The translations under genes and the position numbers were made by a program. This document shows positions 10,547-59,635 of a DNA stretch of 64,000 nt, one piece after another. The stretch's first letter is position 1; the number at the start of each line of letters is the position of its first letter. The stretch lies in sequence record MK250028.1; one strand, written 5' to 3'. The notes under the pieces are model-generated. The model was not told the origin of the DNA, did not search any database, and worked only from the letters and a program-made list of their open reading frames with translations.

Positions 10547-11039
10547 CTATATTATAGTATTTCTTTCTAAAACATTTTTTTAGTAATGATACAACATGAA
10601 TATTAGGAAATTCACAAGGATTATTAGGATTTGTTTCATTATAAATATCGGGATAACAATCTAATATAAATTTAACAACTCCTTGAGATCTAGATACTCC
10701 AGCTGAACAATGAACATAAATATCTTTTCCTAAATTATTCTCTATAAAATTAAATAATTCATTTGCTTGATTATCTGTTAATCCTTTAATTGAATTTGCA
10801 TATTTAATTTCATCTTCTGTTATATCATCTCCATATGCATATAATAAATTATAATCTGTAATATCATAAAAGTCTAAATTAATAACATTATCTCTTGATT
10901 TAAATATATGATATTCATCTTTTGCATTTGGTTCACATATAGATATTATTGCTATATTATCTGGTAATGTATTGTTATCCCATTTATTTTTATTCATTAA
11001 CGATTTAAATCCGTCAAATCCTGTACACCAAATTTTCAT
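10539..11039 (-). CDS. Protein-tyrosine/dual-specificity phosphatase-like protein
   Basis: YVHCSAGVSRS = HCxxGxxR P-loop. Confidence 0.75.
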   Translation of the reverse strand: MKIWCTGFDGFKSLMNKNKWDNNTLPDNIAIISICEPNAKDEYHIFKSRDNVINLDFYDITDYNLLYAYGDDITEDEIKYANSIKGLTDNQANELFNFIENNLGKDIYVHCSAGVSRSQGVVKFILDCYPDIYNETNPNNPCEFPNIHVVSLLKKCFRKKYYNIDD

Positions 11040-11674
11040 AATTTACTTAATTGAATTTCTAATTCATGTATATGTGATAATTCTTTATCTATCTCATCAT
11101 TTAAATAATCTATTCTATCTTGTGATTTTTTAATTAAACGTTTAAGTTCATCTGATAATATATTATTTTCATCAAAATAATTTGAAATAATTTTTTTAAT
11201 ATTATCTATTCCGTTAACAAATGTTTTAAATTCATCATCTGTTAATTTAAAAGAAATTTGATTATTTAAATTATAAACATATATTTTTTCTTTTAATGAT
11301 TTACATTCTTTTAAAAAGAGTTCTATATTTTCATCTATTATAAAATCTAAATCATAATCAGTAAATTTGACAAAAGTATTAATTTCAAAATTATCATACT
11401 TTGGATTAATAAATACGTCGTTAAATATATAATTTACATAATAGAATAAATCAACTCCATAAATATCATGAAACGAATCTGTATGACATACTATAAAATC
11501 TCCTAATTTCATATTAGAAAAATATCCATAATCGAAATCAAATATTTTTATTGTTCTATTTAATAAATCAATTGGTATATTATCTTTTAAAATTTTAGGA
11601 AAATCATTTTCATCAGGACATTCTAATAATTTATGAATATCCTGATATATGTTTTTTAATTTCTCATATTCCAT
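11036..11674 (-). CDS. Hypothetical protein
   Basis: 212-aa ORF with coiled-coil C-terminus. Confidence 0.7.
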   Translation of the reverse strand: MEYEKLKNIYQDIHKLLECPDENDFPKILKDNIPIDLLNRTIKIFDFDYGYFSNMKLGDFIVCHTDSFHDIYGVDLFYYVNYIFNDVFINPKYDNFEINTFVKFTDYDLDFIIDENIELFLKECKSLKEKIYVYNLNNQISFKLTDDEFKTFVNGIDNIKKIISNYFDENNILSDELKRLIKKSQDRIDYLNDEIDKELSHIHELEIQLSKL

Positions 11675-42889: not shown

Positions 42890-43018
42890 ATATTTAATAA
42901 AATAAAAAAGTTTATAACATGTAGTTGCAAATTTACCTGTAATTAAAAAAGATACAGGTTTACCACATATTTTACATGTTGGATGAATGTCAATATTATT
43001 ATATATATGATATTTATC

Positions 43019-43055
43019 AATAAAGGCAAATCTATTCCTTAGATTTGCCTTTATT
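43019..43055 (-). terminator. Intrinsic terminator
   Basis: 16-bp perfect stem below the polymerase exonuclease gene. Confidence 0.8.
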
Positions 43056-43069
43056 CTGCTATTTAATAA

Positions 43070-44620
43070 TTATGTAATTTCTTTTCGTTTTTCAAGTATA
43101 TGTTTTAATTTTTCATATTCTGTATTCGCTATTTTCTTATCCATTTTTGCTGCTTTACGCAATGCAAAATAATGTGTAAGAATCGCAGGAACAACAGCAT
43201 TTGGATCTTTTTTATAAACTGCACCAGAACATGTTTTAATCTCATCAGATTTTGGGATATAATTCTTATCTTTGAATAAGAATGATTCAGGAGAAATTTG
43301 AAATTGTCTCATTATAGATGGATATAGTGACGCGAAATCTAATCCACCTATATATTTAAATATTCCTGGTCTAGTTGGCCACACAAAAGCTCCAACATAT
43401 TGATTATCAGTTAGTTCTGTGTTTTTGTTAAATGGTTTTTCTGGTATCACCTTATAATTTGGGTACACAAAGTTACACATAACAACATGTGTTGGTTGAA
43501 TTGTAGAGAATGCGACATTTAGTTCAAGCCTCAATTCACATGCGAGCATATACCAAATTTCAGCAGTCTTTAAGAATCTGTCTATATGTTCAACCAATAT
43601 GGTATCGATGCAGTTATAGAAAACATATTCTTTGAAATGTTCTTCGAAGAATTCTTTGAATCCCCACGGGTGATTTACCTTCTTGATACCTAACGCTTTT
43701 TCTGCGACAAAATCAAGTGTATTATTTTCTTTTGGTTGGATAGTCATGTCCCATGTTTTATAAACCAATAAGTAGTCATAAATTATTTTATGCATAGGGA
43801 CTTTCACATTGATTGTTTTACCACCGGATCTTGGAGTAATCTTAAAGTTTGTGAATGTTCTTGTAGGAGAAATTCTTTCAATATCAATATTATTGATTTT
43901 ACATCTATTATAGATATATAACCAGTCGAATCCTAGAAAATTCCATCCAGACATTGCAGGAATTGGTTCGATGAATGTTATATAGTCTTCAAGCATTTCC
44001 CGTTCTGTTGGGAAAAATCTGAATTCGAATTTATATCCTTTTGTAATATCTGAACCATTGTTTTCATTTGAATACTTATCAATTTGTTCTTGAACCCATT
44101 GTTGTTCTTCTAAAGTTAAGTCTTTACGTGACCAAATGATAGTTCTAGGAAATTGAGTCATTGATATAGTATTGATACGAGTTGACGCTTCTTCTGGATC
44201 TGGAAATCCTTCATCTGAAACTTCTGTCTCAATATCACACCACCATGTTGGAGGAATATTCATTTCAAACAGAGGATCAACTGCATGTCCAAATGAATTA
44301 AGAATTTCATTTATTCTTAATTCAGGAAGTTTATCAACAGGATGTCTACGAACCCATTTATTATCATAAGACTTCCATTGGTGCATAACAGGTGAACCGT
44401 CTGGATTAAACTTATAACATTTGTTTACAAAATCATATTCTTGAAATAGAGGATCTGCATTTTGTCTGTTTGTATATTTCCATTCGAACATTGATTCTTT
44501 AGGAACAGGATATTGAAGGAATTTAACTTGTCCTTGTTTATCTATATATGATACTATTAATTTCTTTGTCGGTGTGCCATCAGGCAATAAATAATCTACC
44601 TATTCTTTATTAATTATCAT
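43070..44620 (-). CDS. Family B DNA polymerase, N-terminal piece (3'-5' exonuclease plus palm motif A; ends in the fingers)
   Basis: WWCDIETE (ExoI), GWNFLGFDW (ExoII), YNCID (ExoIII), DFASLYPSIM (motif A), ILTHYFALRK. Start MIINKEQ with Q=TAG at codon 7. Confidence 0.9.
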
Positions 44621-44651
44621 AAATGTATAATTATAATGATATATTTTCTGA

Positions 44652-45260
44652 TTAAATTATTTTAGATATTATCTTTAATTTAAGAGCTTCTTCTGAAGTA
44701 AGAATCCAATCTTTCTTTCTTGAATAATTATCCTCAAGTTCTTTTCTTGTTATTGCTGTTTCTTCAATGATTAATTTATATATCATTTCAGTAAGTCTCT
44801 TCGCTTCTTTAACATCATCTTCTAAATCTGCTGTTTTCCCGATTGCAACAGAAGATGCTTGATGAATTAAGAATGTTGTATTCTTGGTCGCGAATCTTTG
44901 TTCATAAGGAACAGAAAGAAGAATACAAATACCTGCAGACATACATGCGCCAGTTGCAGTGATATTTGTCTTGCAATGATTATTAAGCATTATTAACATA
45001 TCATGAATTGCATAACCTTGATAACATGTTCCTCCATATGTGTCTAACCATACATTAACATCTGGTATTTTAATTTCTTCTTTTATATTATGACCGAAAA
45101 ATTCTTTTAATGCTTTTTTATTCTCATCAATTATATTATTATCCCCTGTAATTAAATTAGTTACCCATTTAATAATATCATCTGATGTTTTTTCATCAAT
45201 ATCTTCTGTAATATATAAATTTCTCTTTGTTACATCAAATGTCTACAATTTATTTTCCAT
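44652..45260 (-). CDS. clpP: Second, divergent ClpP-family protease (202 aa, TAG at codon 6)
   Basis: WLDTYGG, GACMSAG (Ser), FLIHQ (His), KKDWILTSEEALKLKII. Confidence 0.75.
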
Positions 45261-45296
45261 ATATTAAAATTTATTAAATATAATTTTAGTTTAAAT

Positions 45297-45325
45297 ATTA
45301 TAGTGAGAAAATAGCGATTTGTTTA
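45297..45325 (-). promoter_or_regulatory. Class II promoter TAAACA-N17-TATAAT (clpP2-pol operon)
   Basis: 17-nt spacer, exact -10. Confidence 0.6.
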
Positions 45326-45335
45326 TATATAAAAA

Positions 45336-45371
45336 AGAGATAATAGAATTAAAATAAACTCTATTATCTCT
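45336..45371 (-). terminator. Intrinsic terminator
   Basis: 11-bp stem agagataatag/ctattatctct. Confidence 0.65.
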
Positions 45372-45405
45372 AAAAATATATTTTCATTATTATGAAAAAA
45401 GATTG

Positions 45406-46047
45406 TTATCTTCTACCACCGAAATGTCCACCACCATTAAAATTACCAGGTCTTCCTTGAGTAACTCTTGTTGAACTTCTATTTGAACCAAATCCTTGTG
45501 GTCTTCTTTGTTGATTACCAAAATTAGGTCTACCATAATTCATTGGTGGACGTTGCATATTAGTTGGTTTATTAGGTCGCTGTCCATTTCCAAATGATGG
45601 TCTATTATTTGGTCTACCATAATTCATTGGTGGACGATTTGGTTTCATAGGGGGATTTCTAAAATCATTTGGTCTACTAGGACGCATAGGTGGTTTTCTA
45701 AATTCATAACCTCGTGGTGCAGGCCTCATAAAATGCCTATAACCCGGTTGATAATGATATATAAATCCTCTTTGTCTCATATATGGAGATGGGTAAAAAT
45801 ACCAATAATTATTATACCTATATGGATAATAATAGATTCCTCTATATAAGTAATAACTTAAAATATTATTTATATAATATGGTGTTCCATACATAACAAC
45901 TGTAGAAAAATCTACTGTAGTTGAAACAGTTGTATATGTATCGTCATCATACTGTTGTGTAGATGCGAATGTTGTTGAACATGCTGAAAATGAAATAACA
46001 GCAAATAACATAATCAAAAAATATTTAATCTTTTTCATAATCAACAC
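45406..46047 (-). CDS. Lipoprotein with Tyr-rich core and Pro/Arg/Gly/Asn low-complexity tail
   Basis: Lipobox FSAC; repeats RPPMNYGRPN. Confidence 0.7.
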   Translation of the reverse strand: MLIMKKIKYFLIMLFAVISFSACSTTFASTQQYDDDTYTTVSTTVDFSTVVMYGTPYYINNILSYYLYRGIYYYPYRYNNYWYFYPSPYMRQRGFIYHYQPGYRHFMRPAPRGYEFRKPPMRPSRPNDFRNPPMKPNRPPMNYGRPNNRPSFGNGQRPNKPTNMQRPPMNYGRPNFGNQQRRPQGFGSNRSSTRVTQGRPGNFNGGGHFGGRR

Positions 46048-46122
46048 ACTTTTTATTATTTATATGATTTAATACATAATTTCTCTACAGTAAATTCATA
46101 TTTGTTAGTATGAAAATTCATA

Positions 46123-46587
46123 TTACTTAATACCAAGATGTCTGTCTATCTCATCTTGCGTCTTTACATTATAAACCATTTCATTGATACCGAAATCTTC
46201 ACTACCAAATACAATACCATCTTCATCTACACTGTAATTAGAGACAGACTTCATATATTCAAGTTTCTTTTTATCTGATGGCATTGTTTTCGCTCTCTTA
46301 TGATCATCAAAATATTGATCTTTATAAAACATCCAATAATCAAGAATATCTTTATCTGATTGTTTTTTGATTGCATCAAATGCTTCATCTTTTGTTTTAT
46401 ATGGACCTCCAAGTTTCCAGCCCACACGATATGCATGAATTTCATCTTGTGTCATATCACCTGTATAAACATCTTCCATGTTAGAATACCATGTGAAGTA
46501 TTCCTCTACATTCTTTGATTCATTAACAGATGTTGAATTACTATTCATTACAGCATTGTAAAATTCATTCTTTTGCTTTGTATTCAT
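46123..46587 (-). CDS. Hypothetical protein
   Basis: 154-aa ORF below a class I promoter. Confidence 0.7.
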   Translation of the reverse strand: MNTKQKNEFYNAVMNSNSTSVNESKNVEEYFTWYSNMEDVYTGDMTQDEIHAYRVGWKLGGPYKTKDEAFDAIKKQSDKDILDYWMFYKDQYFDDHKRAKTMPSDKKKLEYMKSVSNYSVDEDGIVFGSEDFGINEMVYNVKTQDEIDRHLGIK

Positions 46588-46620
46588 AATTTCAAATATT
46601 TTAATATGTTTAACTTACAA

Positions 46621-46632
46621 TACAAAGATACA
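46621..46632 (-). promoter_or_regulatory. Class I promoter TGTATCTTTGTA
   Basis: Identical 12-mer. Confidence 0.75.
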
Positions 46633-46654
46633 TAAAATATTTGATATTAAAAAA

Positions 46655-47314
46655 TTATTGTATTGTAATATTATATGTCCAACCATCTTTATTATAATAT
46701 ATAGAGTCACTGGGAAAATAAACTACTCCAGCGTTTGGTATATCATATGTTCTAGTTTGATATTTTGAGGACGATTCTCCTATATTCATTGTTAGACTTA
46801 CTACAGTTTCAGAAGAAGTATATCTTATAACCATATCTACAACAATAGTATTTCCTACTGGTGAATTATTTTTATAAAAATAATTTTTTACTAAATATGC
46901 ACCATAAATCATTTTTGAACTATTCTGCATATTATACACAAACATTATATCTGCTTTTCTTTCATACACAGTAACAGTTTGCTAAACTTGGAATAATATA
47001 TTTCCATTATACTTAAAAGTAATAAGGCGTGAAGATGTTGTTTCTGAGATATTATAGTATATTGACCGACCTGTTGTTTTATCTTCACTACTAGCTGCGT
47101 CACTGACTCTCGCAGAGCATCCAGATGTATCGCATGTTAATGAAAAAGTATCATTTCCTAATTTATTATTAAAATTACCATCAATATCCTATAAACCAAA
47201 AAATACCTATCTTGTTGGTAGAACACCAAAAGCACTTGTATCTAACATGCCACTTTTTGCATCCTAATTTATTTGCATAATATTTGTACCTGTATATTTC
47301 TAAAAAGTTGACAT
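46655..47314 (-). CDS. Beta-rich virion-like protein, possibly BACON-like (219 aa, code 15)
   Basis: Reads through 5 TAG codons into track ORF 46655..46969; YNISETTSSRLITFKYNG..FQVQQT. Confidence 0.5.
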
Positions 47315-47386
47315 AAAATAAAAAGTATTTTTATATCTACACCCCAATATGAAATACTATAACTTATTTTACATAACTAATAAATA

Positions 47387-47602
47387 ATGAAAATTAATTA
47401 TTCAGTCCAAATGAATTCTAAATAGATAGGAAAATTAATATATAATTTAGATTTGGGAAAATTCAATTATAAAACAAAATTATTTGAATCTAATAATAAA
47501 GATAATTGGTGGAGAAATGAAGAATCATATAATACAATAAAATATCATCCATTAAATTCAAATACAAATAATCTATTATATAAAGAAATAAGGTTATCAT
47601 AA
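47387..47602 (+). CDS. Hypothetical protein (71 aa, one TAG)
   Basis: Open in code 15; stop lies inside a bidirectional terminator. Confidence 0.45.
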
Positions 47603-47620
47603 ATACTGATAACCTTATTT
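47586..47620. terminator. Bidirectional intrinsic terminator
   Basis: 14-bp perfect stem. Confidence 0.75.
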
Positions 47621-47626
47621 TTATAT

Positions 47627-48277
47627 TTAATAAATTCTACATTCAACTGATTGATCAACTTCTCTCTCCATACAATAACTTGCAAAGAAATCAGCTTGCA
47701 TAATCAACACTGACAAAGGAACTTTCTGATATGACTGTTGCATAGAAGGTTTTTGATAATTACTCATCCATGCTCCAATATCACTCATACCCATATGCCA
47801 CATTATAGCACACAATTCTTCACCACTCAACTTAATAAATGATTGCGCAATGAAAATAGACTTCGGTGCATGTCCAAGTGGAAGTTTCTCGTCTATCTTA
47901 TATGAATAATACTTAATCCATTGGTTAGACTCATCTTTCTTAAACTTTTCATACATTACATAATTATTTGCTTTACACAAATCATGTAACAATGCGCAAA
48001 TAATTAATGAATCTTCAGAAATACTATCAATGTTTTTCTCTGGAAGTGTCAACTTTTTATATGTCTCTAAAAATCCTTTGGCCGCATAATATACATTCAA
48101 TGAATGCTGACATAATCCTCCCGGATAATTACAATGATAAATCGTAGAAGACGGTGCTTCAAAGAAATCTGATTTCTCTGAAAGCCAACTAATCAAATTC
48201 TCAATACCTTCACGCTTTGTACTTCTAAGTAACTCAATAAATTCTTGTTTATTCTTCTCTTTTACTATTTGATCCAT
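47627..48277 (-). CDS. HD-domain protein
   Basis: YHCNYPGGLCQHSLNVY, ALLHDLCK, IMWHMG, QADFFAS. Confidence 0.85.
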   Translation of the reverse strand: MDQIVKEKNKQEFIELLRSTKREGIENLISWLSEKSDFFEAPSSTIYHCNYPGGLCQHSLNVYYAAKGFLETYKKLTLPEKNIDSISEDSLIICALLHDLCKANNYVMYEKFKKDESNQWIKYYSYKIDEKLPLGHAPKSIFIAQSFIKLSGEELCAIMWHMGMSDIGAWMSNYQKPSMQQSYQKVPLSVLIMQADFFASYCMEREVDQSVECRIY

Positions 48278-48429
48278 AAATTTATTATGTTTAAAAATTA
48301 ATAATTATATTCATTATATAATTATACTTTATAAAAGTTTATATAAACAATTCATATTATTTTTATATAATAATTAAATTATAATTTTTACAATTAATAT
48401 AAATAGTATAAATTAAATAATTTAGATAA

Positions 48430-49035
48430 ATGAAATACGTTACTGCAAAAGAAGCAAAGAAATATTTTTAGATTTCAGGGTAGACACTAAAAACGTGGAA
48501 AGATTCTAATAAAATCTTAACGAAACAATTTTCATACAAGAAGATTTTGTATGATATTGATTCTGTAAATAATGATAATGTTAATTTAAATAATAGAAAA
48601 AACGTAATATATGCACGAGTTTCATGTAGTAATTAGAAATAGTCATTAGATAATCAGATAGAATTAATTAAATCATATATGATTTCTAATGGTATTAAAG
48701 TGGATGATATATATTCAGAAATTGCTTCTGGACTAAATGAAAATAGGAAAGAATTATCTAGATTAATTCATGATATAGATAATGAATAGATTAATACTGT
48801 ATATATATCATTTAAAGATAGACTAACTAGATTTGGATTTAATTATTTTAAATCAATGTTTGAAAATCATGGAACTAAAATAATTATATTAGACGAAAAT
48901 GAAGAAACAAATAAAGATTATAAAACAGAATTAGTTGAAGATTTAATATCTATTATACATCATTATTCTACTAAATTATATTCAAATAGAAGGAAAGAAT
49001 TGAAAGAAATAGAAAAAATTATAAAAAATGAATAA
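48430..49035 (+). CDS. tnpA: IS607 TnpA serine recombinase (201 aa, 5 TAG)
   Basis: N-terminal HTH; YARVSCSNQKQSLDNQ, SEIASGLNENRK, KDRLTRFG, ELVEDLISIIHHYSTKLYSNR. Missed by the track. Confidence 0.9.
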
Positions 49036-49084
49036 TTTTTAAAATAATTTAGATAAATATTATAAAGATTATAAAAGTTATAAA

Positions 49085-50434
49085 ATGCAAGTATTGAAGA
49101 TTAAATATCAAACAGATGATTAGTCATTAGATATTATACAGAATTATATGAGACAATATAGTTCTGTATAGCATTTTGTATATAATAGAAATCAAGAAGG
49201 TAAATCATAGAAAGATATAAAATAGCAACTTAAATCTTTAAATAATGTAGATTTATTAGATAGTTGGTTTATTCAATGTTCTTTCTATGATATTCCAAAT
49301 AAAAATAATGTAATATTTGGTGGAAAGAAAAATTACTTTTAGAGATTAAAGAATAATATTACTAAAGAACAATTTAAATAGAAACGATTATCAGCTATAT
49401 ATTCAATAGGTGAAGTAGTTAATAAATCAGTTAAAGGAAACAGAAAATTTCATATAGAACAAGATTTAGAAAATATTACTTTCAAACCTAATAAATCTAC
49501 TAAAATAAATTTACAACTTATAGGACTAAATAAACGTAAATAGATTCTATCAAAACTTTATTAGAAACAAGAACAAAAAGAAATAAAGATAGCTTATAAG
49601 TTAGACTTAGAATATGTTTATATAATATTTGATGAAACTAATATTTATAATTATAAAACTAAATTTATAAAGAATAGAGTTCTCTCATTGGATTTGAATC
49701 CTAATTATATAGGATGGAGTATTGTTAATTGGAAATCAGAATCAGAATTTGATGTAGTTAAATCTGGTATTTATTCTATTAAAAAGTTAAATGATAAAGA
49801 TTTTAATTTAAAGAATAAAGGGTATAGTTCTGAATCTAATGAAAGAAAATATATAAGTAATAAACGTAATTTTGAGACTATATAGATAGTAAAGAATTTA
49901 ATTAATAAAGCAATATATTATAAATGTCAATTAATTTCTATTGAAGATTTAAATATTAAATCAAGTGATAAAGTGTTTGGTAAGAGATTTAACAAGTTAG
50001 TTAATAATTCATGGTGTAGGAATACATTTGTAAATAATTTAATTAAACGATGTAATATATTCAATATAAAGTTATTAAAAGTTAAACCGGAATATAGCTC
50101 ATTTATTGGTAACTTTTTATACCGTTCATTAAATTTACCTGATATGGTATTAGCGTCAATAGAAATTGGACGTAGAGGATATGAGTTTTATAATCAATAT
50201 ATAAGTAAAACTAAAGAGATAAAAAAGAATATAATTCAACCTGATTTAAATATGTATCAAAGGTTGTACCTTAAGTCATTGGAAGAATTTAAGTTACAAC
50301 CTACATACAAGGATTTGATTGGACTATATTACTTCTTCAAAAAGTCGAAACTTAAATATCGACTTTCTACAGATTAGTTTAATCTGTAGTTTTACAGATT
50401 TTATTCAAATGTAAGTTTAATTACATTTATATAA
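49085..50434 (+). CDS. tnpB: TnpB-like RuvC nuclease without zinc finger (449 aa, 11 TAG)
   Basis: RuvC-I LSLDLNPNYIGWSIV, RuvC-II ISIEDL, VKPEYSSFIGN, RuvC-III LPDMVLASIEIGRR. Confidence 0.8.
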
Positions 50435-50518
50435 ATTATAAATGTTATAATTTAATACAATAAAATTATTTAAATATATGAAAACTAAATAAAAACATAA
50501 GATAAAATAAATTTAATT

Positions 50519-52024
50519 ATGAAAACTAAATTATTGATTTTTTTAATGTGTGCATTCAGTTTTATAGGATTTACTGGATGTTCTACAGAAGTAGAGAACA
50601 ACAACACTATCATTATTCCAGGTTATAATGGAACTGAGGTGGTGAAGACAGGTTCTAACTTACTTGTCAATGTTGGAGAAAATAAGTATGGTGAGAAAAC
50701 ACAAGCATTATCAAGAGTAAAAGCAATAACACGTGCATCCGTTGATAAATCAACTATTTCGATTACAACAGATGATCAAATCAATACACCTACAATTGGT
50801 TTGTATTCAAACTATGCATGGAATACTTACACTAATGGTCAGCAAATCTATGTTGGTGCAAGCAATGGTTATCTTTTTGCAACAACATCATTGACAACAC
50901 CTTACAAAACCGAATGGAATGTTAATAATACCATAAGTAATGGTGTACTTACATTGACATCACAGATGTTGGATGACAAATATGCTAAGCCTGTTCCTGT
51001 GACATTCTGGGGTAATCATTCATTAGTAACATCAAGTGTAGAAAAAACAATCTTTGATCCTAATGATAATGATTGGAAGAATATGGCAGTGACAAGTACA
51101 ACAAAGTCTGTTGCTATCTCAAAGTCTATTGAATACGCAAATTCAGCTGTTAGAATGAATTTGACATTAGGAACAGAAGGTGTTCTTTGTTGGTATGACA
51201 AGTATGATACATCAAAAGATGAAGCTGATGTTACAACAGTAAAGATAACAGAAGATAATATCAATACTATGCCAACTTCTGAGACAAAGACTTATGAAGT
51301 AAATGGTAAACAATATAAAATTATCAATATTGATAATATTGGTAGCAAGACCGTAGGAAATTACTTGCATTACAAAGCAGGTTATGCTATAAAGATTGCA
51401 CAAACGGACAAAGGTACAGGAAACTGGCACTTCATTGGTCCTAATGAATCAGATGACATCAACTATGAAGTTCTTGAAGCACGCATTGTTTCATCTAAAT
51501 CTTGTACTTATAAGAATGAATATCAATATGAACCAAGTTCAGATGAAGTTACTTATAAGTATGAGTTGAATGAATCACTTCAATCAGGTGAGAATGCAGT
51601 ATTCTCTATTATGCCAACATCAGAAAAATCATCTGTTGTCGTTTTGAAATGTAAAATCACAAAATTCCCAACGCAAGATCATGATAGATTCCTTTGGTAT
51701 ATCAAAGAATCAATAAAAGATAATTCACCTTACATAAAAGTTGGTGATAACTCTACATTCTATATCATTGGAAAGATTTCAACATCTGACAAGACAATAC
51801 CTACAGGTTCACCTTACTCAACAACATGGAACAAAGGTATTTATTGTCCTGATGTAATAACTAATGTAAATGTACATATTGATGATCTCACGGTAAATGG
51901 TTCCGTTGTAGTTGATCCAGATGGTTCAGATGAAACAGATATTAATAAGATACATTATAATTTCGATTATGAATATGGTACTATGGATGGTGTTTGGACA
52001 ACAGGAAATACAACAAAACATTAA
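50519..52024 (+). CDS. Large beta-rich lipoprotein (Bacteroidota surface/fimbrial-like)
   Basis: Lipobox FTGC; 501 aa, Thr/Ser/Asn-rich; TAG-free. Confidence 0.7.
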   Translation: MKTKLLIFLMCAFSFIGFTGCSTEVENNNTIIIPGYNGTEVVKTGSNLLVNVGENKYGEKTQALSRVKAITRASVDKSTISITTDDQINTPTIGLYSNYAWNTYTNGQQIYVGASNGYLFATTSLTTPYKTEWNVNNTISNGVLTLTSQMLDDKYAKPVPVTFWGNHSLVTSSVEKTIFDPNDNDWKNMAVTSTTKSVAISKSIEYANSAVRMNLTLGTEGVLCWYDKYDTSKDEADVTTVKITEDNINTMPTSETKTYEVNGKQYKIINIDNIGSKTVGNYLHYKAGYAIKIAQTDKGTGNWHFIGPNESDDINYEVLEARIVSSKSCTYKNEYQYEPSSDEVTYKYELNESLQSGENAVFSIMPTSEKSSVVVLKCKITKFPTQDHDRFLWYIKESIKDNSPYIKVGDNSTFYIIGKISTSDKTIPTGSPYSTTWNKGIYCPDVITNVNVHIDDLTVNGSVVVDPDGSDETDINKIHYNFDYEYGTMDGVWTTGNTTKH

Positions 52025-52046
52025 TTATTAAGTTATTATAAAATTA

Positions 52047-52080
52047 AAAGGAATATAAACAACTAAGTTTATATTCCTTT
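52047..52080. terminator. Bidirectional intrinsic terminator
   Basis: 14-bp perfect stem. Confidence 0.8.
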
Positions 52081-52086
52081 ATTTTT

Positions 52087-52347
52087 TTACTTATGACTTT
52101 CAATTTCTTTATTAATATCATCAATAGAAACAAGTCCCACCCATTTCTTTAATTCTTCACCATTATCACCTTCCAATACAATAACAGGAACATTTCTGAT
52201 ATTATACTTATCAATAACTGCAGATGTTTCATCATCTTCATCATCTACATCATATTTCTTTAATTCACATGTATTAAAGTTTTCCAACCTCTTATCCATT
52301 ACATTACATGGACCACACCATGTAGCACCTACTTTAATTAATCTCAT
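52087..52347 (-). CDS. Thioredoxin
   Basis: ATWCGPC; IRNVPVIV. Confidence 0.9.
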   Translation of the reverse strand: MRLIKVGATWCGPCNVMDKRLENFNTCELKKYDVDDEDDETSAVIDKYNIRNVPVIVLEGDNGEELKKWVGLVSIDDINKEIESHK

Positions 52348-52365
52348 ATTATTTAAAAATTATTT

Positions 52366-52794
52366 TTACCAACATTCATAATCTGTAATATCTTCAGAAT
52401 CACCATTTTTGTTACATACAATACGTATACAGCTACCAATACCAGTTCCTCCTTCAATAAACGAAAATGGAAGCTTATATTTACTTTTTACATTCCAATT
52501 ATCTTTATTGTAATTCGTAACATCTTCAGATTCATTACATGTTTCACATACATATGTATGGCTAAAACCACAATTCCACATATCAATTAAATATACAGAA
52601 CCTCTACCACCATTGCACACTGCTTTATGCTTTACATAAAAATTATGTGCATTCTTTTTCTCTATATCATCCATTTCAGTAAATCCATGATTATCTTTCA
52701 ATAATGCAATAGATGTGATACAAGACTGTGTACCAACATCATTCTCATGTTTATTAATAAATGATATAGACATTTCTAATTCTTTATCTGTCAT
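52366..52794 (-). CDS. Hypothetical protein (possible zinc binding)
   Basis: Cys/His pattern incl. CETC; C-terminal EDITDYECW. Confidence 0.65.
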   Translation of the reverse strand: MTDKELEMSISFINKHENDVGTQSCITSIALLKDNHGFTEMDDIEKKNAHNFYVKHKAVCNGGRGSVYLIDMWNCGFSHTYVCETCNESEDVTNYNKDNWNVKSKYKLPFSFIEGGTGIGSCIRIVCNKNGDSEDITDYECW

Positions 52795-52821
52795 CTTATT
52801 AAAATTAATTCAATATTTTAT

Positions 52822-52850
52822 ATTATATGAAAAAAGGTAAGATTTGTTTC
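52822..52850 (-). promoter_or_regulatory. Class II promoter variant GAAACA-N17-TATAAT, overlapping the pol terminator hairpin
   Basis: 17-nt spacer; hairpin aaaggtaagatt/aatcttaccttt. Confidence 0.5.
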
Positions 52851-52882
52851 TTAATCTTACCTTTATATTTTATTTACTATTA

Positions 52883-53857
52883 TTACCAAAGTGCGGCTGT
52901 ATAACATAAGTTAGATGTTAATGTAGTATAACCAATAATAGATATAATTCTATTACAAGGTTCAAGAATCATTTTTTCAAATTGTTTATCATAATCTATT
53001 TCAGGTGCATATTCTATTGGATAAGCGCCAGGTAAAAATGCAAAACAATCATAATTTCTATCCTTTGCATAATACCACTTAACTTTATCTGCTGTCTTAA
53101 TAGGATTATACTTTACCTTATATTTCTTATTCTTTGGTTGATTCAAAATAAAGTTAGCAATTCCTGAAGCCTTAACCTGAATAGGACAATGTTCTCCGAA
53201 TACCAACTTATTCTTATCATCAAGAACGAACTTTTGATAATTTCCTATTGAACTACCTTTTGAAATCTCTGATGGATCTTTAAACATAAACTGTTGTTTA
53301 TATCCCTTTATTTTCGCAATAATATCTTCATATGGTGGTCTTTCCTTATGTTCCTGATACCAATGCAACATATAACATGTAAAGTCTTTTTGACATTCTC
53401 TTGCAAATGGTGGTGTAGAACCTTGAACGATCTCAAGTCCCTTATAAACGACTTCTTCCATTTGCTCCAAGAAAATATTAGGTTCCTTAAAACACTCTGC
53501 CATTGCATAATGTTTCTTTGAAGTCAAGATAGTTGTATCTGCAATTTTCTCTAACTCAAGATTCTGAATATTTACATCACAATTATATTTCTTTGCATAT
53601 TCCTCATATTTCTGTTGCATATATGGTCCACAACCATAATTCCAAAGATCAACAACAAATTGTGCACATTTAGACTCTGGAATATCAAGCTGTTGACAAA
53701 TTCTTCCAAATTCTACATATATTGAGTTGTGAGCCAGTATCTCATTTGCGAAGAATGTATGAGTATCATCTACCTCAATATCATATACATACTCATCATT
53801 AAAATCTTCAAGTTGCTCTATTACATCAATATCCTCTACTTGTATATTGTAATTCAT
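52883..53857 (-). CDS. Split-intein C part (44 aa) plus family B DNA polymerase C-terminal piece
   Basis: VYDIEVDDTHTFFANEILAHN|SIYVEFG; LELEK, KKHYA, YKGLEIVQGSTPPF. Confidence 0.9.
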   Translation of the reverse strand: MNYNIQVEDIDVIEQLEDFNDEYVYDIEVDDTHTFFANEILAHNSIYVEFGRICQQLDIPESKCAQFVVDLWNYGCGPYMQQKYEEYAKKYNCDVNIQNLELEKIADTTILTSKKHYAMAECFKEPNIFLEQMEEVVYKGLEIVQGSTPPFARECQKDFTCYMLHWYQEHKERPPYEDIIAKIKGYKQQFMFKDPSEISKGSSIGNYQKFVLDDKNKLVFGEHCPIQVKASGIANFILNQPKNKKYKVKYNPIKTADKVKWYYAKDRNYDCFAFLPGAYPIEYAPEIDYDKQFEKMILEPCNRIISIIGYTTLTSNLCYTAALW

Positions 53858-53896
53858 CTTTTTTCTCCTATTATTAATTGTGTATTTTCAACATTA

Positions 53897-54433
53897 TTAA
53901 AATGTTCTAATATATAATTATATAAATAATTTTTTATATTGTTTTTAATATCTTCTCTATCTTTATGTGTTTTATAGAATATCCAGTTATCAATAAAATA
54001 TGGATAAATGAATAACATATTTAATTTATTATTTTTTACATCTTCCCATTTTTGAATATCAGTTTCTGCCCATGTATGAATTAATCCATCATAATTATTT
54101 TTCGTATTTGTTTTAGAACATTTACTTAAAAAATAATTATACTTATCTTTATCTAATTCTTTATTATATAAACATTTATTATGCCAAAATGATCCTTGAT
54201 ACTCTATATATAAATTATACTGTTTTATATAAAAATCGCAATTATGATTATATTCTTTTGTTTTATAACATCTTATAACATCTTATAACATCATCACCAT
54301 ATAATTCATTTAAAAAAACATATAAAATTTCTTCTTCAATAGATGTTTTATATGATTTATGCTTATTATAAGATTCTGTGACTTTATCTTGTATTTCTGA
54401 TAACTATGAAATATAATCATCATCTATTACCAT
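53897..54433 (-). pseudogene. Frameshifted Vsr-like/PD-(D/E)xK endonuclease
   Basis: SIEEEILY...DDVIRCY then CDFYIKQYNLYIEYQGSFWH. The frame is broken by an extra 10-bp unit at 54263-54292. Confidence 0.6.
54263..54292. repeat. 10-bp tandem repeat x3 (ttataacatc)
   Basis: Seen directly. Confidence 0.9.
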
Positions 54434-54732
54434 ACTAAATTATTATGTTCATTTTCATAATTCTTTTCATTATAACAACACTCATCGAATTTTTTCACTT
54501 TTTCTATATATTCATCTATAATATCAATACCTAAATATTTTGCATATATTATTTTTGCATCTGATATATCACATTTATCATTCATTGTAATACAATTAAC
54601 ATTATTATTCAATGCAAAGTATATATCTTTATATGTTGATATTATTTGTTTTAGAAAATATTTTAATAACGTATTATGTTTCTTAAACATATTATTCCTT
54701 ATAATCCTTATTTTTGAACGATAATATATCAT
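54427..54732 (-). CDS. Hypothetical protein or endonuclease fragment
   Basis: 101 aa, ATGA-coupled to the upstream endonuclease. Confidence 0.45.
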   Translation of the reverse strand: MIYYRSKIRIIRNNMFKKHNTLLKYFLKQIISTYKDIYFALNNNVNCITMNDKCDISDAKIIYAKYLGIDIIDEYIEKVKKFDECCYNEKNYENEHNNLVW

Positions 54733-55847
54733 ATTTCAGTTATATCATTTAATTGATCTTTATTATTAATCATCTATATAAGTGATTTTATAGTTCCTTT
54801 CTTATCATTTTTATATGTAGATTCCCAAACTATTATAACCTTGCAATTCAATGTCTGTTGAATATCTTCAATTCTTTCTCTATCATGATTCCATTTATCT
54901 TTAACTGAACGTCCGTTTCTTAATATAAAATAATTTGTTTCATTAGCATTATATTTCTTTGGATTAAAATGATAAAAATCTCCATAAAATTCTATAACAA
55001 TATTTAATGATTTATCGTAATAATCTACATGATAAAAATTATTATTTAATAACTTAACTGTATATTCTATATAAGTATCATTATCTTTATAATATTCTTT
55101 TAAATGAGAAAATAACTCTAATGATATATTTGACTTATTACCTATTAAATAATATTGTTCTGAACGTTTTTCTACAAATTCATTATATTTTTGTGTTCCA
55201 TCTTCTTTACCGTATTCTTCGATAAAATAATCTAATGTACATGTATATCTCTGACGTTCGATATAAGCATTCCATATTTTTAAACCATCTATTTCACCAT
55301 GTCTTTTAATAAGATTTTCCTTTGTTACCGCTCTAGATTTATTGTATTCATCAAATTTATCTTGAGACATACCATATTTTTCATGTTTATATTCATATGT
55401 ATTTGTAACTGATTGTTTATTACAATATGAATTCCATTTTTCTAATCCTATATCTTTTCCATATCGTTTAATCATTTTTTCTTTGGTAACACATTGTCTT
55501 TCTTTTGCTACAGGGTTGAAATCCTTATCAGGTACTCCAAATCCATACTACGTATATTTTGCAGCTTTATGCGCAAATTTAAATTTTACATCTTTAAAAT
55601 TTGGAAATTTCTTGCATACACAATCATAACACCTACATAAATGATATTCATTACCATTATAATTTCTAGTACTTAAAAATGATAACTTATTATTATCACA
55701 TACTATTTTATGTGTTTTTGAGTTTATATGAAATGTACCATTATCATATATAAGAAATTTACCACATTCTTTACAATAACATATTGATGGATCTATATTA
55801 TTATCTTTACAATATTGAACTACGTTCTATTCACTTAAATATTTCAT
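54729..55847 (-). CDS. Free-standing homing endonuclease, Vsr-like/DUF559-type C-terminus (372 aa, code 15)
   Basis: TAATG overlap with the pol-IntN stop. Cys-rich N-terminus, KRYG/KYG repeats, YHVDYY...VIEFYGDFYH...IIVWES. Confidence 0.75.
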
Positions 55848-56659
55848 TATCTATCTAATGTTATAATTTTATCAGATTTTTTTATTTCTCTTGCAGGAAC
55901 AGATATTAATTCATTATTTCGTATAACCATTATACTATGATCACCTGTAACTATAAGCTCTTTACCGGATTTAGTTTTTAACCTAAACTTATCTTTAGTT
56001 ACTTTATGTCTCATTATATAATTAATCGGTCGTGTAATAGTTTTATAATCATGATCCTTATATGATAATGTATCGTGATTATGTACAGGAATGACTTCAG
56101 ACCCATTTTGTAATTTTATAACAACATCGTCATTTTCATATTTTGCTTTAGTAAAAAAGCCTTCCATTGAAAATACTTTATTATCTATAACTACTTGAGT
56201 ATCAGCAGTTTGCGAATCCGTATCCCCCGCTACAGTTAGTGATTGGTTTCCATCAAGATACGAAAACTCGGGTCCGTCCAACGTACCTGTTTCAGTTGTC
56301 TTACCTTTTGCGATACTTACTCGTTTTGCTTTCTCCGAATCAATACCAAGTTTCTTATGCAATTCTGTATCATTCTGAAATATACCACTGAAATACGCGT
56401 TAACAGAATTCTCAGAATAATGGTTCAAATCCTGACCCTGAAGAGTAATAGACTCTGCAACTGCTGTGTTATGCGCAATGAAATACTTGCTCGCAGTTGC
56501 TCCATAAACACTATTGATAAATTTCTTTAACGCTAACTGTTTAGTCTCATAAAAATCCCCTAAATTTTTTAATCTTTCTACTTCTTTTTCAAGTTCTTCA
56601 ATACTGCAATTCTCAGGGTCTACTTGGCAAAATTTATAATTCTTATGTTGTTCTTCCAT
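55847..56659 (-). CDS. Family B DNA polymerase middle piece (motif B) plus split-intein N part (122 aa)
   Basis: KQLALKKFINSVYGA; VAGDTD|SQTADTQV; intein block B LIVTGDHSIM; true TAA stop. Confidence 0.9.
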   Translation of the reverse strand: MEEQHKNYKFCQVDPENCSIEELEKEVERLKNLGDFYETKQLALKKFINSVYGATASKYFIAHNTAVAESITLQGQDLNHYSENSVNAYFSGIFQNDTELHKKLGIDSEKAKRVSIAKGKTTETGTLDGPEFSYLDGNQSLTVAGDTDSQTADTQVVIDNKVFSMEGFFTKAKYENDDVVIKLQNGSEVIPVHNHDTLSYKDHDYKTITRPINYIMRHKVTKDKFRLKTKSGKELIVTGDHSIMVIRNNELISVPAREIKKSDKIITLDR

Positions 56660-56683
56660 TTTATTCTAATTAACGATTTAATT

Positions 56684-56712
56684 ATTATACAAATAAAAAT
56701 TCTATTTGTTTA
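56684..56712 (-). promoter_or_regulatory. Class II promoter TAAACA-N17-TATAAT (pol middle piece)
   Basis: 17-nt spacer, exact -10. Confidence 0.6.
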
Positions 56713-56748
56713 TTAAAAACATTATTAACAATATTTAATATAAGATAT

Positions 56749-58407
56749 ATGGAAATTACAGATCAAATTATAATAGATAAGTTAACAGTATTTAGACATA
56801 ATAAAATACAATTAAATACATGTAGAATAAAAGAAACATGGTTAAAAGATCATGGTTTATATGAGTATTTAATTAATAGATTTAAAACCATAGATAATAT
56901 TCAAGAAATTATATATAGGATATATTATAAATTACCGGATAATTTACAGTTACATTGTAATACTTGTGGTAATGAAATACCTTTACAATTTAGAGGATTC
57001 TTATATGGATATAATCAATATTGTTCTTATAAATGTTCTTTAAATGATCCAAATAAAATACATAAATTAACAAATGTAAAACAAAAAGATGATATAGATG
57101 ATAATTATGTATTGAATTTAATGATTAAAGACAATAGATTAGTTTCAGAATATTGTAAGAATAAAAAACTTAAGCAATTTGGTATATATGATTATATGAT
57201 GAATAGATATGACGATTTACAGAAAAATAAATCTATTATTCAAGAAATTATATATAGAATGAAATATCATATAGATAAATCTCCTCGATGTCCAACATGT
57301 GGGAAATATGTTAACTTTTATAGATTTAGTGAAGGATTCAGGCATTATTGTTCAAATGAATGTGCAAATAAGAATGAAAATAATGTTAACATAAAATTAA
57401 ATAATAAGCATAAAACTATAGAAAATAAATGGTTAAACCGTGGATATAAAATTAAATATACAGAAAATAAAAATGAATTTCTTGTATATAATCAATGTAA
57501 TTTACATAATCCATTTAAAATTAAAAAATATACATTCTTTAATAGACAAGGAAAAGATATAATTATGTGTCCTATTTGTAATCCTGAAAAAAATATGGAG
57601 ACTTCTATAGAATATAAAATTAGGTTAATATTAGAGAAACATAATATAAAATTTACGCAACATGTTAGGTATATAATATCACCAAGGGAATTAGACTTTT
57701 ATTTACCTGCTTATAAAGTAGCAATAGAATGTAATGGGATTTATTGGCATTCAGGGATAAACGGTAAAAATAGATTTAAAGTTAAATATGAACTATTATC
57801 CAAAACTGATATATAGATGTTAACTTTTTGGGAAGACGATATTCATTATAACATTGATAAGATAGAAAATATCATATTAAGAAGTTGCAATTTAGAAAAG
57901 AAATTATTTTCAAATGATACTGTTATTAGAGAAATAGATATTGATATATGTAAGTCATTTATTAATAATAACTCAATTAAAAAATATATTATATCTAATA
58001 TAAATTTAGGTTTATTTAAGGATGATAAATTATTATTTGTTATGACATTTTCAAATAATAATGATAATAATTATACATTAAATCAAATATGTTATAAAGA
58101 TAATTTATATGTTATAAATTCTGAAAAATTATTATTATATTATTTTTTTAATAATTATAAATTTAATAAATTGATAACATATTGTGATTTAGAAATTGAA
58201 AATAATAAATTATATGAAAAATTAGGATTCAAATTAAATAGTGATAAATTAAAATTTAATCTGAATTATTATAATTATAGAACAACTGAACATAGAATTA
58301 ATAAGAAAGAAGTTAATCAATTATTGAAATTAGATGATTCTGATTCATTAGAAGATTATATGAAATGTTATTCAGGATATTTAATATATGAGAAAGAGAA
58401 TGTATAA
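56749..58407 (+). CDS. Hef-like/Vsr-like homing endonuclease (552 aa; two track ORFs joined by TAG)
   Basis: CxxC..F..GF..YCS repeats, ELDFYLP..KVAIECNGIYWHS, TFWEDD, TYCD...LYEKLGF. Confidence 0.75.
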
Positions 58408-58431
58408 TTTAAATTTATATACATTCTCTTT
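58393..58431. terminator. Bidirectional intrinsic terminator
   Basis: 14-bp stem between convergent endonuclease genes. Confidence 0.7.
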
Positions 58432-58448
58432 TATTATTTTCTAAATAT

Positions 58449-59635
58449 TCATTTATTATAGTTTTTATTATTTCTATCTTATTGCTCCATATAGGAAGAT
58501 AATTCAGATTATTCATTTTCGCAGTTTGACATTTAAAAGGATCAATGATTGACCAAACATTTACAGCAGATTTATATTGTTTTGATATTTCTGCTTTTTG
58601 TTTCCACTTATTTAATAAATCAATATCATCTTTATTATCTTCATCAAATAAATGTTTCCCATGTGTCCAAAATGCGTTTATCTCTATAAATAAATCTAAT
58701 GGTTTTATATAGAAATCTACATGGAATGGATAACGCTCATCAACATTTACATTAAACTATATATCATCTTTATCAAATATTGTTTGTAAATATTCATATG
58801 TTTGATATTCTGGTTTTGACATACCAAAATTATCTTTATATTTTTTCTTTATTGTTTTTACATATTGATCAAACTAATATTGATGAAAATTTTCTAATGA
58901 ACCATATTTTTTAATAACAGTTTCTTTTGTCTTTTCTTTATTATTAAATGTTGGATCCCCATATAATTCTAATTTTGTTTCTTTAATTTTGTTTTTTATT
59001 TCTTCATTTTTTGCAGGGTTATCAACGCCATATTTTTTAATAACAGTTTCTCTTGATTTTTCTTTATTATTATCTGACTAAAAACTATATTTACACCCAT
59101 ATTTTTTTAAACATGTATTAATTGATTTCTATTTAACTTCTTCATTCTATCCTGAAAATTCTACANNNNNNNNNNNNNNNNNNNNNNNNNNTGTCTTCTA
59201 TAAATATTCCGATGTTTTTGTATATGATGAAACTCCATATTTTTCTAAACATGTTTGTTTTATTTTATCTTTAACTGATTTTAACTACATTTGATGTTCA
59301 ACACCATATCGTTCTTTTAATGTATTTTTTATTTTATTCTATACATTAACTGAATTCATTACACATCGTGAATTTGAACAAAATTTACGAAATCCTCTAC
59401 TATAACAATTAAATCTCACAGGTTTCCCACATGTTTCACATACTGGTCTTATTTCTATTTTATTTACAATACGGTATATTGTCTCCTATATAGATTCGCT
59501 ATCATTATATCTATTAATTAAATAATCATAAATATCTTGATGTTTATTTAACCAAGATAATCTTGTATAATTTTTTGCTAACTAATTCTTTTTTGTTATA
59601 AATTTTTCTTTTATGTAGTCATCATTAATAATCAT
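58449..59635 (-). CDS. Homing endonuclease with KYG repeats and a Vsr-like domain (interrupted by N gap; code 15)
   Basis: RPVCETCG..GFRKFCS, TxxxKYGV repeats, RYPFHVDFYIKPLDLFIEINAFWTHG. Missed by the track. Confidence 0.7.
59166..59191. other. Assembly gap (N run)
   Basis: 26 N. Confidence 1.

Follow-up and report, generated by a model that had tools for sequence, protein, structure and literature searches.

Polymerases made from more than one gene product

The Prevotella gut megaphage Lak-B9 encodes a family B (T4 gp43-type) DNA polymerase in three pieces, the second and third of which carry the two halves of a split intein. The genes lie between positions 43,070 and 56,659 of the stretch of DNA analysed here (the window, 64,000 nucleotides of sequence record MK250028.1). 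Both kinds of break have counterparts elsewhere. In Aeromonas phages 44RR and 25, a T4-type polymerase is broken non-covalently into gp43A and gp43B, with an N-terminal piece of ~500 amino acids (aa) (Petrov, Karam and co-workers, as cited in PMC2677866). The families phrog_2062 (502 positions) and phrog_1918 (382 positions) represent the gp43A and gp43B pieces, and the Lak proteins match both end to end. Unlike in Lak, there is no intein in 44RR and the pieces are adjacent. The two 44RR proteins reportedly form an active complex.

The other kind of break is the fractured gene, where a split intein interrupts a coding sequence and its halves flank a free-standing gene for a homing endonuclease, often of the Vsr-like kind. 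Those described by Dassa et al. (2009, PMC2677866) are single fractures recovered from short marine metagenome reads. The arrangement of Lak pieces 2 and 3 is identical, the endonuclease gene sitting where the endonuclease domain of an intein would be. Two homologous inteins are known to trans-splice in vitro: Aes123 PolB1 (structure 9HTH), a cysteine-less split intein of T4-like Aeromonas salmonicida phages (PMC11923092), and PolB16, a cysteine-less split intein from a sheep-gut metagenome (PMC10189870). In the Pseudomonas jumbo phage group of MIJ3 and PA5oct and in Salicola phage SCTP-2, a polymerase intein occupies the same site and has the same motifs (S-x-x-G/D-S/T, TEDHSIMV, ILVHN-S), split in MIJ3 and contiguous in SCTP-2. 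However, the MIJ3 spacer holds an HNH rather than a Vsr-like endonuclease, and a fingers split is not reported there. The polymerase of Nanoarchaeum equitans (Neq Pol) is also a family B enzyme rebuilt by a natural cysteine-less split intein from separate loci, but it is archaeal, thermophilic and in two pieces, with no intervening endonuclease.

Both breaks are found together in Aeromonas phage Aes508 (JN377894), annotated with gp43A, a Seg-like endonuclease, gp43B-1 with a group I intron and the N-terminal intein half (IntN), a VSR-like open reading frame (ORF), and gp43B-2 with the C-terminal half (IntC). Aes508, Aes123, Aes516 and AS-gz resemble Lak in having three polypeptides, a split at the fingertip, an intein at DTD-S, Ser1 and Ser+1, and no cysteine, and their IntN, IntC and Vsr-like endonuclease are homologous to those of Lak. 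The Aes508 genes differ in being adjacent and collinear (A, B-1, B-2), with the Seg-like GIY-YIG endonuclease at the first split, whereas the Lak order is B-1, B-2 and then A, either 8 kb downstream or ~220 kb away, with a TAG-recoded endonuclease gene and no intron found. In the Tenacibaculum phages PTm1 and PTm5, jumbo phages of a Bacteroidota host, ORF-236 (497 aa, the counterpart of piece 1), ORF-239 (annotated 'intein-containing split DNA polymerase precursor'), ORF-240 and ORF-241 (IntC plus C-extein) are homologous to the Lak genes. These genes differ in using the standard code and in being collinear, pieces 1 and 2 having two unknown ORFs between them. Iyer et al. place Lak-B8 with PTm1 among the group 2.2 jumbo phages (PMC7824862). 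Translated searches find the three-piece pattern also in LR756500, an unannotated huge phage with 10 kb between pieces 1 and 2. Campylobacter phage CP21, whose annotation is fragmented, may also have the fingers split.

Lak-B9 is thus an unannotated case of a layout already annotated in other phages. An earlier note on this DNA, made from the sequence alone, had called the combination of both splits in one enzyme unusual, which is too strong since Aes508, PTm1 and PTm5 are annotated with the same pieces. Lak stands out by having its pieces dispersed and in another order, by its recoded endonuclease gene, and by an unusually complete series of alleles in relatives.

LR756500 also has, at 9883-10008, a second IntC-like segment that is 43% identical to the Lak IntC, and a Vsr-like homologue at 10095-11147. 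Both lie between its polymerase pieces 1 and 2 and suggest another fractured gene nearby with a related intein.

The three polymerase genes of Lak-B9

Over positions 43000-57000, the window shows 100% identity to Prevotella phage Lak-B9 (MK250028), and other Lak-B genomes reach 99%. The matching Lak records are all without annotation, and the 2019 Nature Microbiology description of Lak phages and the 2024 taxonomy paper mention neither the polymerase nor inteins. Lak phages are reported to read TAG as glutamine (code 15; PMC6784885), and TAG was translated so where needed; pieces 2 and 3 are free of TAG. The region itself carries three signs of this code. The transposase ORF of an IS607-family element (48430-49035) is intact only with TAG as Gln, and then matches positions 1-185 of the 187 of NF033518 at 171.7 bits (cutoff 110). 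An endonuclease ORF (54729-55847) matches a 378-aa homologue over residues 2-372 only with three TAG codons read through. Finally, the N-terminus of piece 1, MIINKEQ with Q7 encoded by TAG, is kept as MII[NH]KEQ in relatives, one of which translates under table 11. The polymerase genes and their parts are as follows.

43070..44620, minus strand: piece 1 (gp43A-like, 516 aa with TAG as Gln); N-terminal domain, 3'-5' exonuclease, palm motif A and first fingers helix
55847-56659, minus strand: piece 2 (270 aa); motif B, AGDTD, 122-aa IntN, TAA
56216..56659, minus strand: N-extein of piece 2 (residues 1-148); second fingers helix, motif B KKFINSVYG, palm to motif C AGDTD
55847..56215 including the TAA, minus strand: IntN (residues 149-270 of piece 2, 122 aa, no cysteine); Ser1, NX motif R217-H218, block B T238-x-x-H241
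52883-53857, minus strand: piece 3 (324 aa); 44-aa IntC ending in AHN, then SIYVEF
53726..53857, minus strand: IntC (residues 1-44 of piece 3, no cysteine); block F VYDIEVDDTHTF, block G ILAHN
52883..53725, minus strand: C-extein of piece 3 (residues 45-324); begins SIYVEF, rest of palm and thumb

The earlier note had proposed these three ORFs and their contents, and the sequence bears out all three. For piece 1, described there as an exonuclease with motif A that ends in the fingers, the motifs Exo I (DIETE), Exo II (NFLGFD), Exo III (YNCID) and motif A (DFASLYPS) are present, and the protein aligns to residues 114-493 of RB69 gp43 (E value 3e-30), to phrog_2062 (E 1e-67) and to positions 115-500 of the 856 of phrog_262. 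Piece 2 has, as proposed, motif B, GDTD and a 122-aa IntN closed by a true TAA, and this stop recurs in 15 Lak genomes and at least 115 protein clusters. The N-extein matches phrog_1918 and positions 497-569 of phrog_262, and its motif B region aligns to RB69 553-614. Piece 3 begins, as claimed, with a 44-aa IntC followed by SIYVEF, seen in the sequence and in its matches to 9HTH and PolB16, and its extein matches phrog_262 positions 581-840 (E 5e-30) and also phrog_1918.

The profile of the full-length enzyme, phrog_262, is tiled without overlap at 113-503, 497-569 (475/497-569 across Lak genomes) and 580-840; in this comparison piece 3 of Lak-B1 was taken from a separate translated search. 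Exo I-III and motifs A, B and C are therefore distributed over one full-length profile, as expected of a family B polymerase of the T4 gp43 type. In the complete genomes of Lak-B1, A1, A2 and C1 there is no phrog_262 match beyond the three pieces and no second family B polymerase gene, so that the three pieces are the only family B polymerase of the phage. Compared with Lak-A and Lak-C, the ratio of nonsynonymous to synonymous substitution rates (dN/dS) is 0.04-0.05 for the piece 2 extein and 0.04 for that of piece 3, and there are no in-frame disruptions within the pieces.

An insertion of ~80 aa (…YYQWVHYD…CDWF…) is found in the palm part of piece 2, after the motif B helix, in a subgroup of Lak-like phages (P0078, P0083, P0120, P0306 and similar), in intein-bearing and intein-free alleles alike.

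The split intein

The earlier note had placed a split intein at GDTD-S, and homology, conservation, intein-free alleles and complex prediction all agree with this. IntN matches 9HTH by phmmer (E 6.6e-12), starting at the same DTD junction, and IntC matches both 9HTH (E 2e-4, through HN-S-x-Y) and the PolB16 intein 8CPN; the Pfam family PF14890 is found on IntN homologues. The Lak intein is accordingly homologous to the Aes123 PolB1 type and has its insertion site. It has the residues of a class 1 intein: S149, T238 and H241 in IntN, D26 and H33 in IntC, and H43-N44 before S45. Together with the absence of cysteine from both halves, its [R/K]-H NX motif upstream of block B, a signature of Ser1 inteins (Pasch et al., PMC10189870), marks it as a cysteine-less Ser1/Ser+1 split intein.

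These residues are conserved. Of the 120 best clusters homologous to piece 2, 115 have Ser after DTD and 118 have T-x-D-H, and the NX motif R217-H218, T238 and H241 are invariant among homologues. In IntC, D26, H33, H43, N44 and Ser+1 are invariant in 20 clusters, and the block G junction HN-S is kept in all 86 IntC-bearing clusters of piece 3. The dN/dS values (0.12-0.29 for IntN and 0.08 for IntC, against Lak-A and Lak-C) indicate purifying selection on both halves.

The intein is naturally split. Its halves are separate ORFs predicted to associate, and a TAA follows IntN in all Lak genomes. The stop at 55847-55849 had been named as a possible assembly error within one continuous intein. This is not borne out, because the TAA and the ORF length are the same in 15 independently assembled Lak genomes and at least 115 metagenome protein clusters, and because a contig obtained independently, from a second sample in the same study, covers 55643-55919 without a difference, although its low depth makes it weak evidence alone.

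When IntN (residues 141-270 of piece 2) and IntC (residues 1-56 of piece 3) were modelled together, the interface score ipSAE was 0.87, against 0.00 for the best control. Among 80 solved complexes 58 reached this mark, compared with 2 among 110 mismatched pairs, counts that hold only roughly here, the prediction having been run on our own alignments. At least 91% of contacts were common to the runs, and the confidence score (pLDDT) of the partner was at least 76. In the predicted complex, residues 147-152 of piece 2 contact residues 34-45 of piece 3, so that both splice junctions meet.

The IntN sequence has variants. In Lak-C1 (L007 ~1841-1843), codon 2 of IntN is TAG (GDTDS-Q...), and under the standard code its piece 2 would end after GDTDS, with an open frame of 150 aa where the other genomes have 271-273 aa. 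Thr, a nucleophile not readily placed at position 1 among known natural inteins, replaces Ser there in P0004 (a 525-kb contig), P0006 and P0041 (AGDTD-TSAKDT...), and Cys does so in one cluster, P0037.

Alleles with and without the intein

Comparison with intein-less alleles had been suggested as a check, and it gave the predicted sequence. Cluster P0261, on a 78-kb contig read with table 11, is a contiguous, intein-free gp43B-like protein of 425 aa that is 81% identical to piece 3 by BLASTP. At the intein site, P0261 and ~30 further clusters read ...AGDTDSIYVEFGR... / ...SLTVAGDTDSIYVEFGRIC..., which equals the predicted ligation product AGDTDSIYVEF. More distant relatives (P0360 and P0362, the latter checked under table 11) have a contiguous mini-intein at the same site, and Lak-A2 has kept the split intein and lost the endonuclease gene, its spacer of 367 nt holding a small ORF alone. 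With intein-free, mini-intein, and split alleles with and without the endonuclease, all stages of the fractured-gene scheme of Dassa et al. are found within the clade. DNA identity with the intein-free allele at the splice junction (29/36 and 26/36) does not stand out from the mean over the gene (77.6%), and thus gives no homing-site signal.

The layout of one non-covalent break at the fingertip, one split intein at GDTD-S and endonuclease genes between the intein halves is therefore supported by homology, conservation, intein-free alleles and complex prediction.

Genes between the intein halves

The earlier note had also seen endonuclease genes between IntN and IntC. There is one intact gene of 372 aa and one degraded remnant, with a small ORF between them:

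54729..55847, minus strand: Vsr-like homing endonuclease (372 aa, three in-frame TAG); its ATG overlaps the piece 2 stop (TAATG)
54427..54732, minus strand: small ORF of 101 aa (80 aa in Lak-A and Lak-C; L006 2310-2552); its start overlaps the endonuclease stop
53854..54433, minus strand: degraded second endonuclease, specific to Lak-B; two frames sharing DVIRCYK across a GATGTTATAA repeat

The intact gene has homologues at the equivalent position in Aes508 (Aes508_035, E 3e-31, annotated 'similar to VSR endonuclease domain'), CP21 (CP21_248, E 4e-34) and PTm1 (ORF-240, E 8e-19, annotated 'VSR endonuclease'). It matches phrog_22677 (E 3e-48) and belongs to a family of 2835 representative clusters at E <= 1e-3. 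Sequence searches of PDB for Vsr were marginal (E 0.5 with the single sequence, 0.02 with a six-sequence profile, 0.3 with a 50-sequence profile), and comparison of folds was therefore needed. The AlphaFold2 model (pLDDT 93.8) has as its top PDB matches E. coli Vsr (1vsr and 1cw0) with probability 1.00 and a TM-score of 0.61-0.64 by target length; the Foldseek E value is ~6e-3, with no match at E <= 0.001. In the six-sequence profile search, Vsr came first, and D275, H293 and D322 aligned with the DF, WH and D regions of Vsr. The protein thus has the fold of the Vsr catalytic core and its Asp/His/Asp residues. It is a putative homing endonuclease.

As in fractured genes, the endonuclease is free-standing and lies on the same strand between the IntN and IntC ORFs, an arrangement with equivalents in Lak-A1, Lak-C1, P0233, Aes508, PTm1 and CP21. 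Homing by cleavage of the intein-free or endonuclease-free allele would fit three indirect signs: a dN/dS of 0.18-0.30, polymorphism for presence (the gene is missing from Lak-A2) and the intein-free alleles of relatives. The small ORF is found in every Lak lineage (Lak-A1, A2, C1 and B) with a dN/dS of 0.18 and stays where the endonuclease is lost; no family in PHROGs, NCBIfam or ESM Atlas matched the 101-aa protein. The remnant of the second endonuclease, absent from Lak-A and Lak-C, has a 142-aa frame weakly matching phrog_3339, a homing endonuclease family (E 2.3e-4). IntN and IntC are separated by 1992 nt in Lak-B, compared with 1451 nt in A1 and only 367 nt in A2.

The break in the fingers

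Piece 1 ends at about residue 510 of RB69, in the fingertip loop, and piece 2 starts at about residue 516. The gp43A of Aes508 and piece 1 stop at an identical position in the alignment; PTm1 ORF-236 has a similar helical, basic tail at its end, but its alignment to the reference stops earlier. In P0233 (789 aa) and P0225 (757 aa), piece 1, piece 2 and IntN form one protein in which the fingertip loop is continuous, and pieces 1 and 2 align to these residue for residue across the break with no sequence lost. Downstream of P0233 are a 410-aa gene and then an IntC-bearing gene of 320 aa. As in gp43A and gp43B, the break is in the fingertip loop and both halves are kept as ORFs. It leaves motif A on the piece 1 side and motifs B and C on the other, and neither side has a complete active site. 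Activity would thus require non-covalent assembly of piece 1 with the spliced chain.

The seventh codon of the piece 1 gene (44600-44602) is TAG, as it is in Lak-A1 (L014 13592-13594), in both cases by sequence; for Lak-B1, A2 and C1 the same is implied by open-frame lengths, and relatives that use table 11 encode Gln at this position with a Gln codon. Translation of piece 1 in full therefore depends on suppression of TAG. A TAG here is odd, this being a replication gene of a phage said to avoid TAG in large parts of its genome.

Genomic arrangement and neighbouring genes

All three pieces are on the minus strand, where the Lak-B order is piece 2, endonuclease, small ORF, piece 3 and a hairpin; in Lak-B9, 8263 nt lie between the end of piece 3 and the start of piece 1 downstream. 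The placing of piece 1 about 8 kb downstream in another operon, as first proposed, agrees with this distance and with the hairpins that bracket its unit. The features around the polymerase genes are these:

52833..52864, minus strand: terminator-like hairpin (12-bp stem and T run) directly after piece 3, closing the unit of piece 2, endonuclease, small ORF and piece 3
43019..43055, no strand assigned: hairpin with a 16-bp stem, just downstream of the piece 1 stop
48414-50425, plus strand: IS607-family element; serine recombinase 48430-49035 with five TAG, TnpB-like ORF 49085-50434 with eleven TAG
56749-58407, plus strand: endonuclease-like gene with a zinc-ribbon N-terminus; phrog_3339, phrog_559 (E 1e-43), weak Vsr; diverges from the piece 2 start
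58415-59635, minus strand: endonuclease-like gene with a zinc-ribbon N-terminus; includes a run of N

No terminator-like hairpin was found between pieces 2 and 3. Piece 1 and a ClpP-like gene (44652-45260) form a unit of their own, bracketed by hairpins at 45336-45371 and 43019-43055. The 8.3 kb between piece 3 and piece 1 contain terminator-like hairpins, plus-strand genes and the IS607 element; the genes include a Cys-rich ORF, a thioredoxin-like ORF, a plus-strand lipoprotein-like ORF, an HD phosphohydrolase and others. Terminator-like sites number 9 in the region, against 2.7 +/- 1.5 in shuffled sequences. A sigma-70 promoter scan gave fewer matches than shuffles (126 against 142) and is ill-suited to a phage of Bacteroidota; it was therefore disregarded, and terminator-like hairpins alone were used. 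Rfam and ARAGORN searches returned nothing in the window, which therefore has no group I intron, unlike Aes508, and no suppressor tRNA.

In Lak-A1, A2 and C1, a distance of 222-228 kb separates piece 1 from the other two pieces, and it is encoded on the opposite strand. By synteny mapping, the block of pieces 2 and 3 (equivalent to Lak-A1 423.6-430.1 kb) adjoins the piece 1 block only in Lak-B. The pieces are likewise apart in other huge phages, by 100-280 kb in LR745206, LR756502 and LR756504, and by ~620 kb in record coordinates in LR756501. The block of HD phosphohydrolase, pieces 2 and 3 and a 552-aa endonuclease (47590-58402, compared with Lak-A1 423628-430056) is circularly permuted as well as relocated, the HD gene flanking its opposite end in Lak-A1.

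The IS607-family element is present in Lak-B9 and precisely missing from Lak-B1, with 86% coverage alike in B1, B3, B5 and B6. It is recently mobile and itself written in code 15; a repeat search for its ends gave only AT-rich noise. The neighbourhood of the polymerase genes is crowded with selfish nucleases, all with TAG codons. Between the intein halves, the endonuclease has 3-4 TAG codons, while pieces 2 and 3 have zero.

Proposed assembly and its alternatives

We put at roughly 85% the probability that the best explanation is a polymerase of three polypeptides, two of them joined by a split intein and piece 1 associating non-covalently. The sole family B (T4 gp43-type) DNA polymerase of Lak-B9 would then be built as follows. 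Pieces 2 and 3 would be co-transcribed with the intervening gene for the Vsr-like homing endonuclease. Once translated, the 122-aa IntN and the 44-aa IntC would associate into one class 1 intein that would use oxyester chemistry only, by way of Ser1, the NX Arg-His, Thr-x-x-His, His-Asn and Ser+1. Self-excision and ligation would give a gp43B-like chain of ~428 aa with motif C (AGDTD-SIYVEF) intact. Piece 1, encoded elsewhere, would pair its fingers helix and its motif A palm strand with the spliced chain non-covalently, as gp43A is reported to do with gp43B in 44RR. The fragmentation would not be a designed feature but would have been left by selfish elements, a free-standing homing endonuclease having invaded an intein.

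Several points weigh against this explanation. Taken by itself, piece 2 gives no more than a marginal phmmer match to RB69 (E 0.035-0.16), and a phmmer search of the piece 3 extein against PDB sequences matched no polymerase; the assignment of these two pieces therefore relies on PHROG profiles. The native Aes123 intein is only ~30% efficient in vitro (PMC11923092). Because homologous inteins are already solved, the high score of the modelled IntN/IntC complex may reflect likeness to them rather than binding of the Lak copy. Support from DNA reads is thin (four runs of one study, with short low-depth contigs, one of which bridges the TAA), and a search for RNA runs found none. Lastly, the association of piece 1 draws on the common split site, on the 44RR work, and on the sharing of one active site by motifs A and C.

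If the intein halves no longer splice, their sole role could be to clamp pieces 2 and 3 tightly together, without a covalent bond, in a three-subunit complex. Split gene products can assemble through interaction domains derived from mobile elements (PMC3045599), and the evolution of IntN is faster than that of the exteins, above all in Lak-A2 (57% identity). However, the residues of the chemistry (Ser1, Arg-His, Thr and His of block B, the terminal Asn and Ser+1) are kept over more than 100 clusters, and the nearest characterised homologue splices. Moreover, the junction is inside motif C (DTD-S), next to the catalytic aspartates, where an unexcised domain of 166 aa would be hard to tolerate. 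A clamp without splicing is hence very unlikely. Piece 1 might act alone, for example as a stand-alone proofreading exonuclease that does not join the spliced chain. Its position is uncoupled from the other pieces, 8 kb away in Lak-B and ~220 kb away on the opposite strand in Lak-A and Lak-C, and it is co-oriented with the ClpP-like gene, not with replication genes. But motif A (DFASLYPS) and one fingers helix of the two are on piece 1, motifs B and C being on pieces 2 and 3, so that a complete polymerase active site is on neither part. The break, furthermore, is in a loop that is continuous in P0225 and P0233, and the same split is annotated gp43A/gp43B in Aes508. A solitary role for piece 1 is on these grounds highly improbable.

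The fragmentation could also be an artefact, with the TAA an assembly error, or it could be decay, with a dying gene replaced by another replicase. The Lak-B9 genome is indeed a metagenome assembly for which the retrieved read support is low-depth contigs only, and group 2.2 jumbo phages carry a split minimal Pol III alpha-like enzyme (PMC7824862). Yet 15 Lak genomes, sampled from different hosts and countries, share an identical architecture, as do hundreds of metagenomic clusters. The exteins have a dN/dS of 0.04, the pieces are without frame disruptions, and the complete genomes have no other family B polymerase. Artefact or decay is already largely refuted and hardly credible.

Implications

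The proposed three-polypeptide assembly bears on the regulation, evolution and use of such polymerases. If TAG acts as a stop until a phage suppressor tRNA builds up, full-length piece 1, and with it the assembled polymerase, would appear only after the code switch, and the homing endonuclease would likewise be made only afterwards. That the fragmentation is tied to the Lak code switch in this way, with TAG recoding timing both replication and homing, is a speculative and very unlikely idea.

Cysteine-less split inteins active at ambient temperature are described as very rare (PMC10189870). The Lak relatives offer about a hundred natural variants of a cysteine-less intein from gut temperature, three clusters among them with Thr1, that may be useful for protein engineering. 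DNA polymerase trees or polymerase chain reaction (PCR) markers for Lak phages must allow for three genes and an intein. Finally, the closely related genomes display the stages of fracture, fingers both split and unsplit, and piece 1 at distances from 8 to ~220 kb. They thus form a natural series for the breakage and dispersal of an essential gene.

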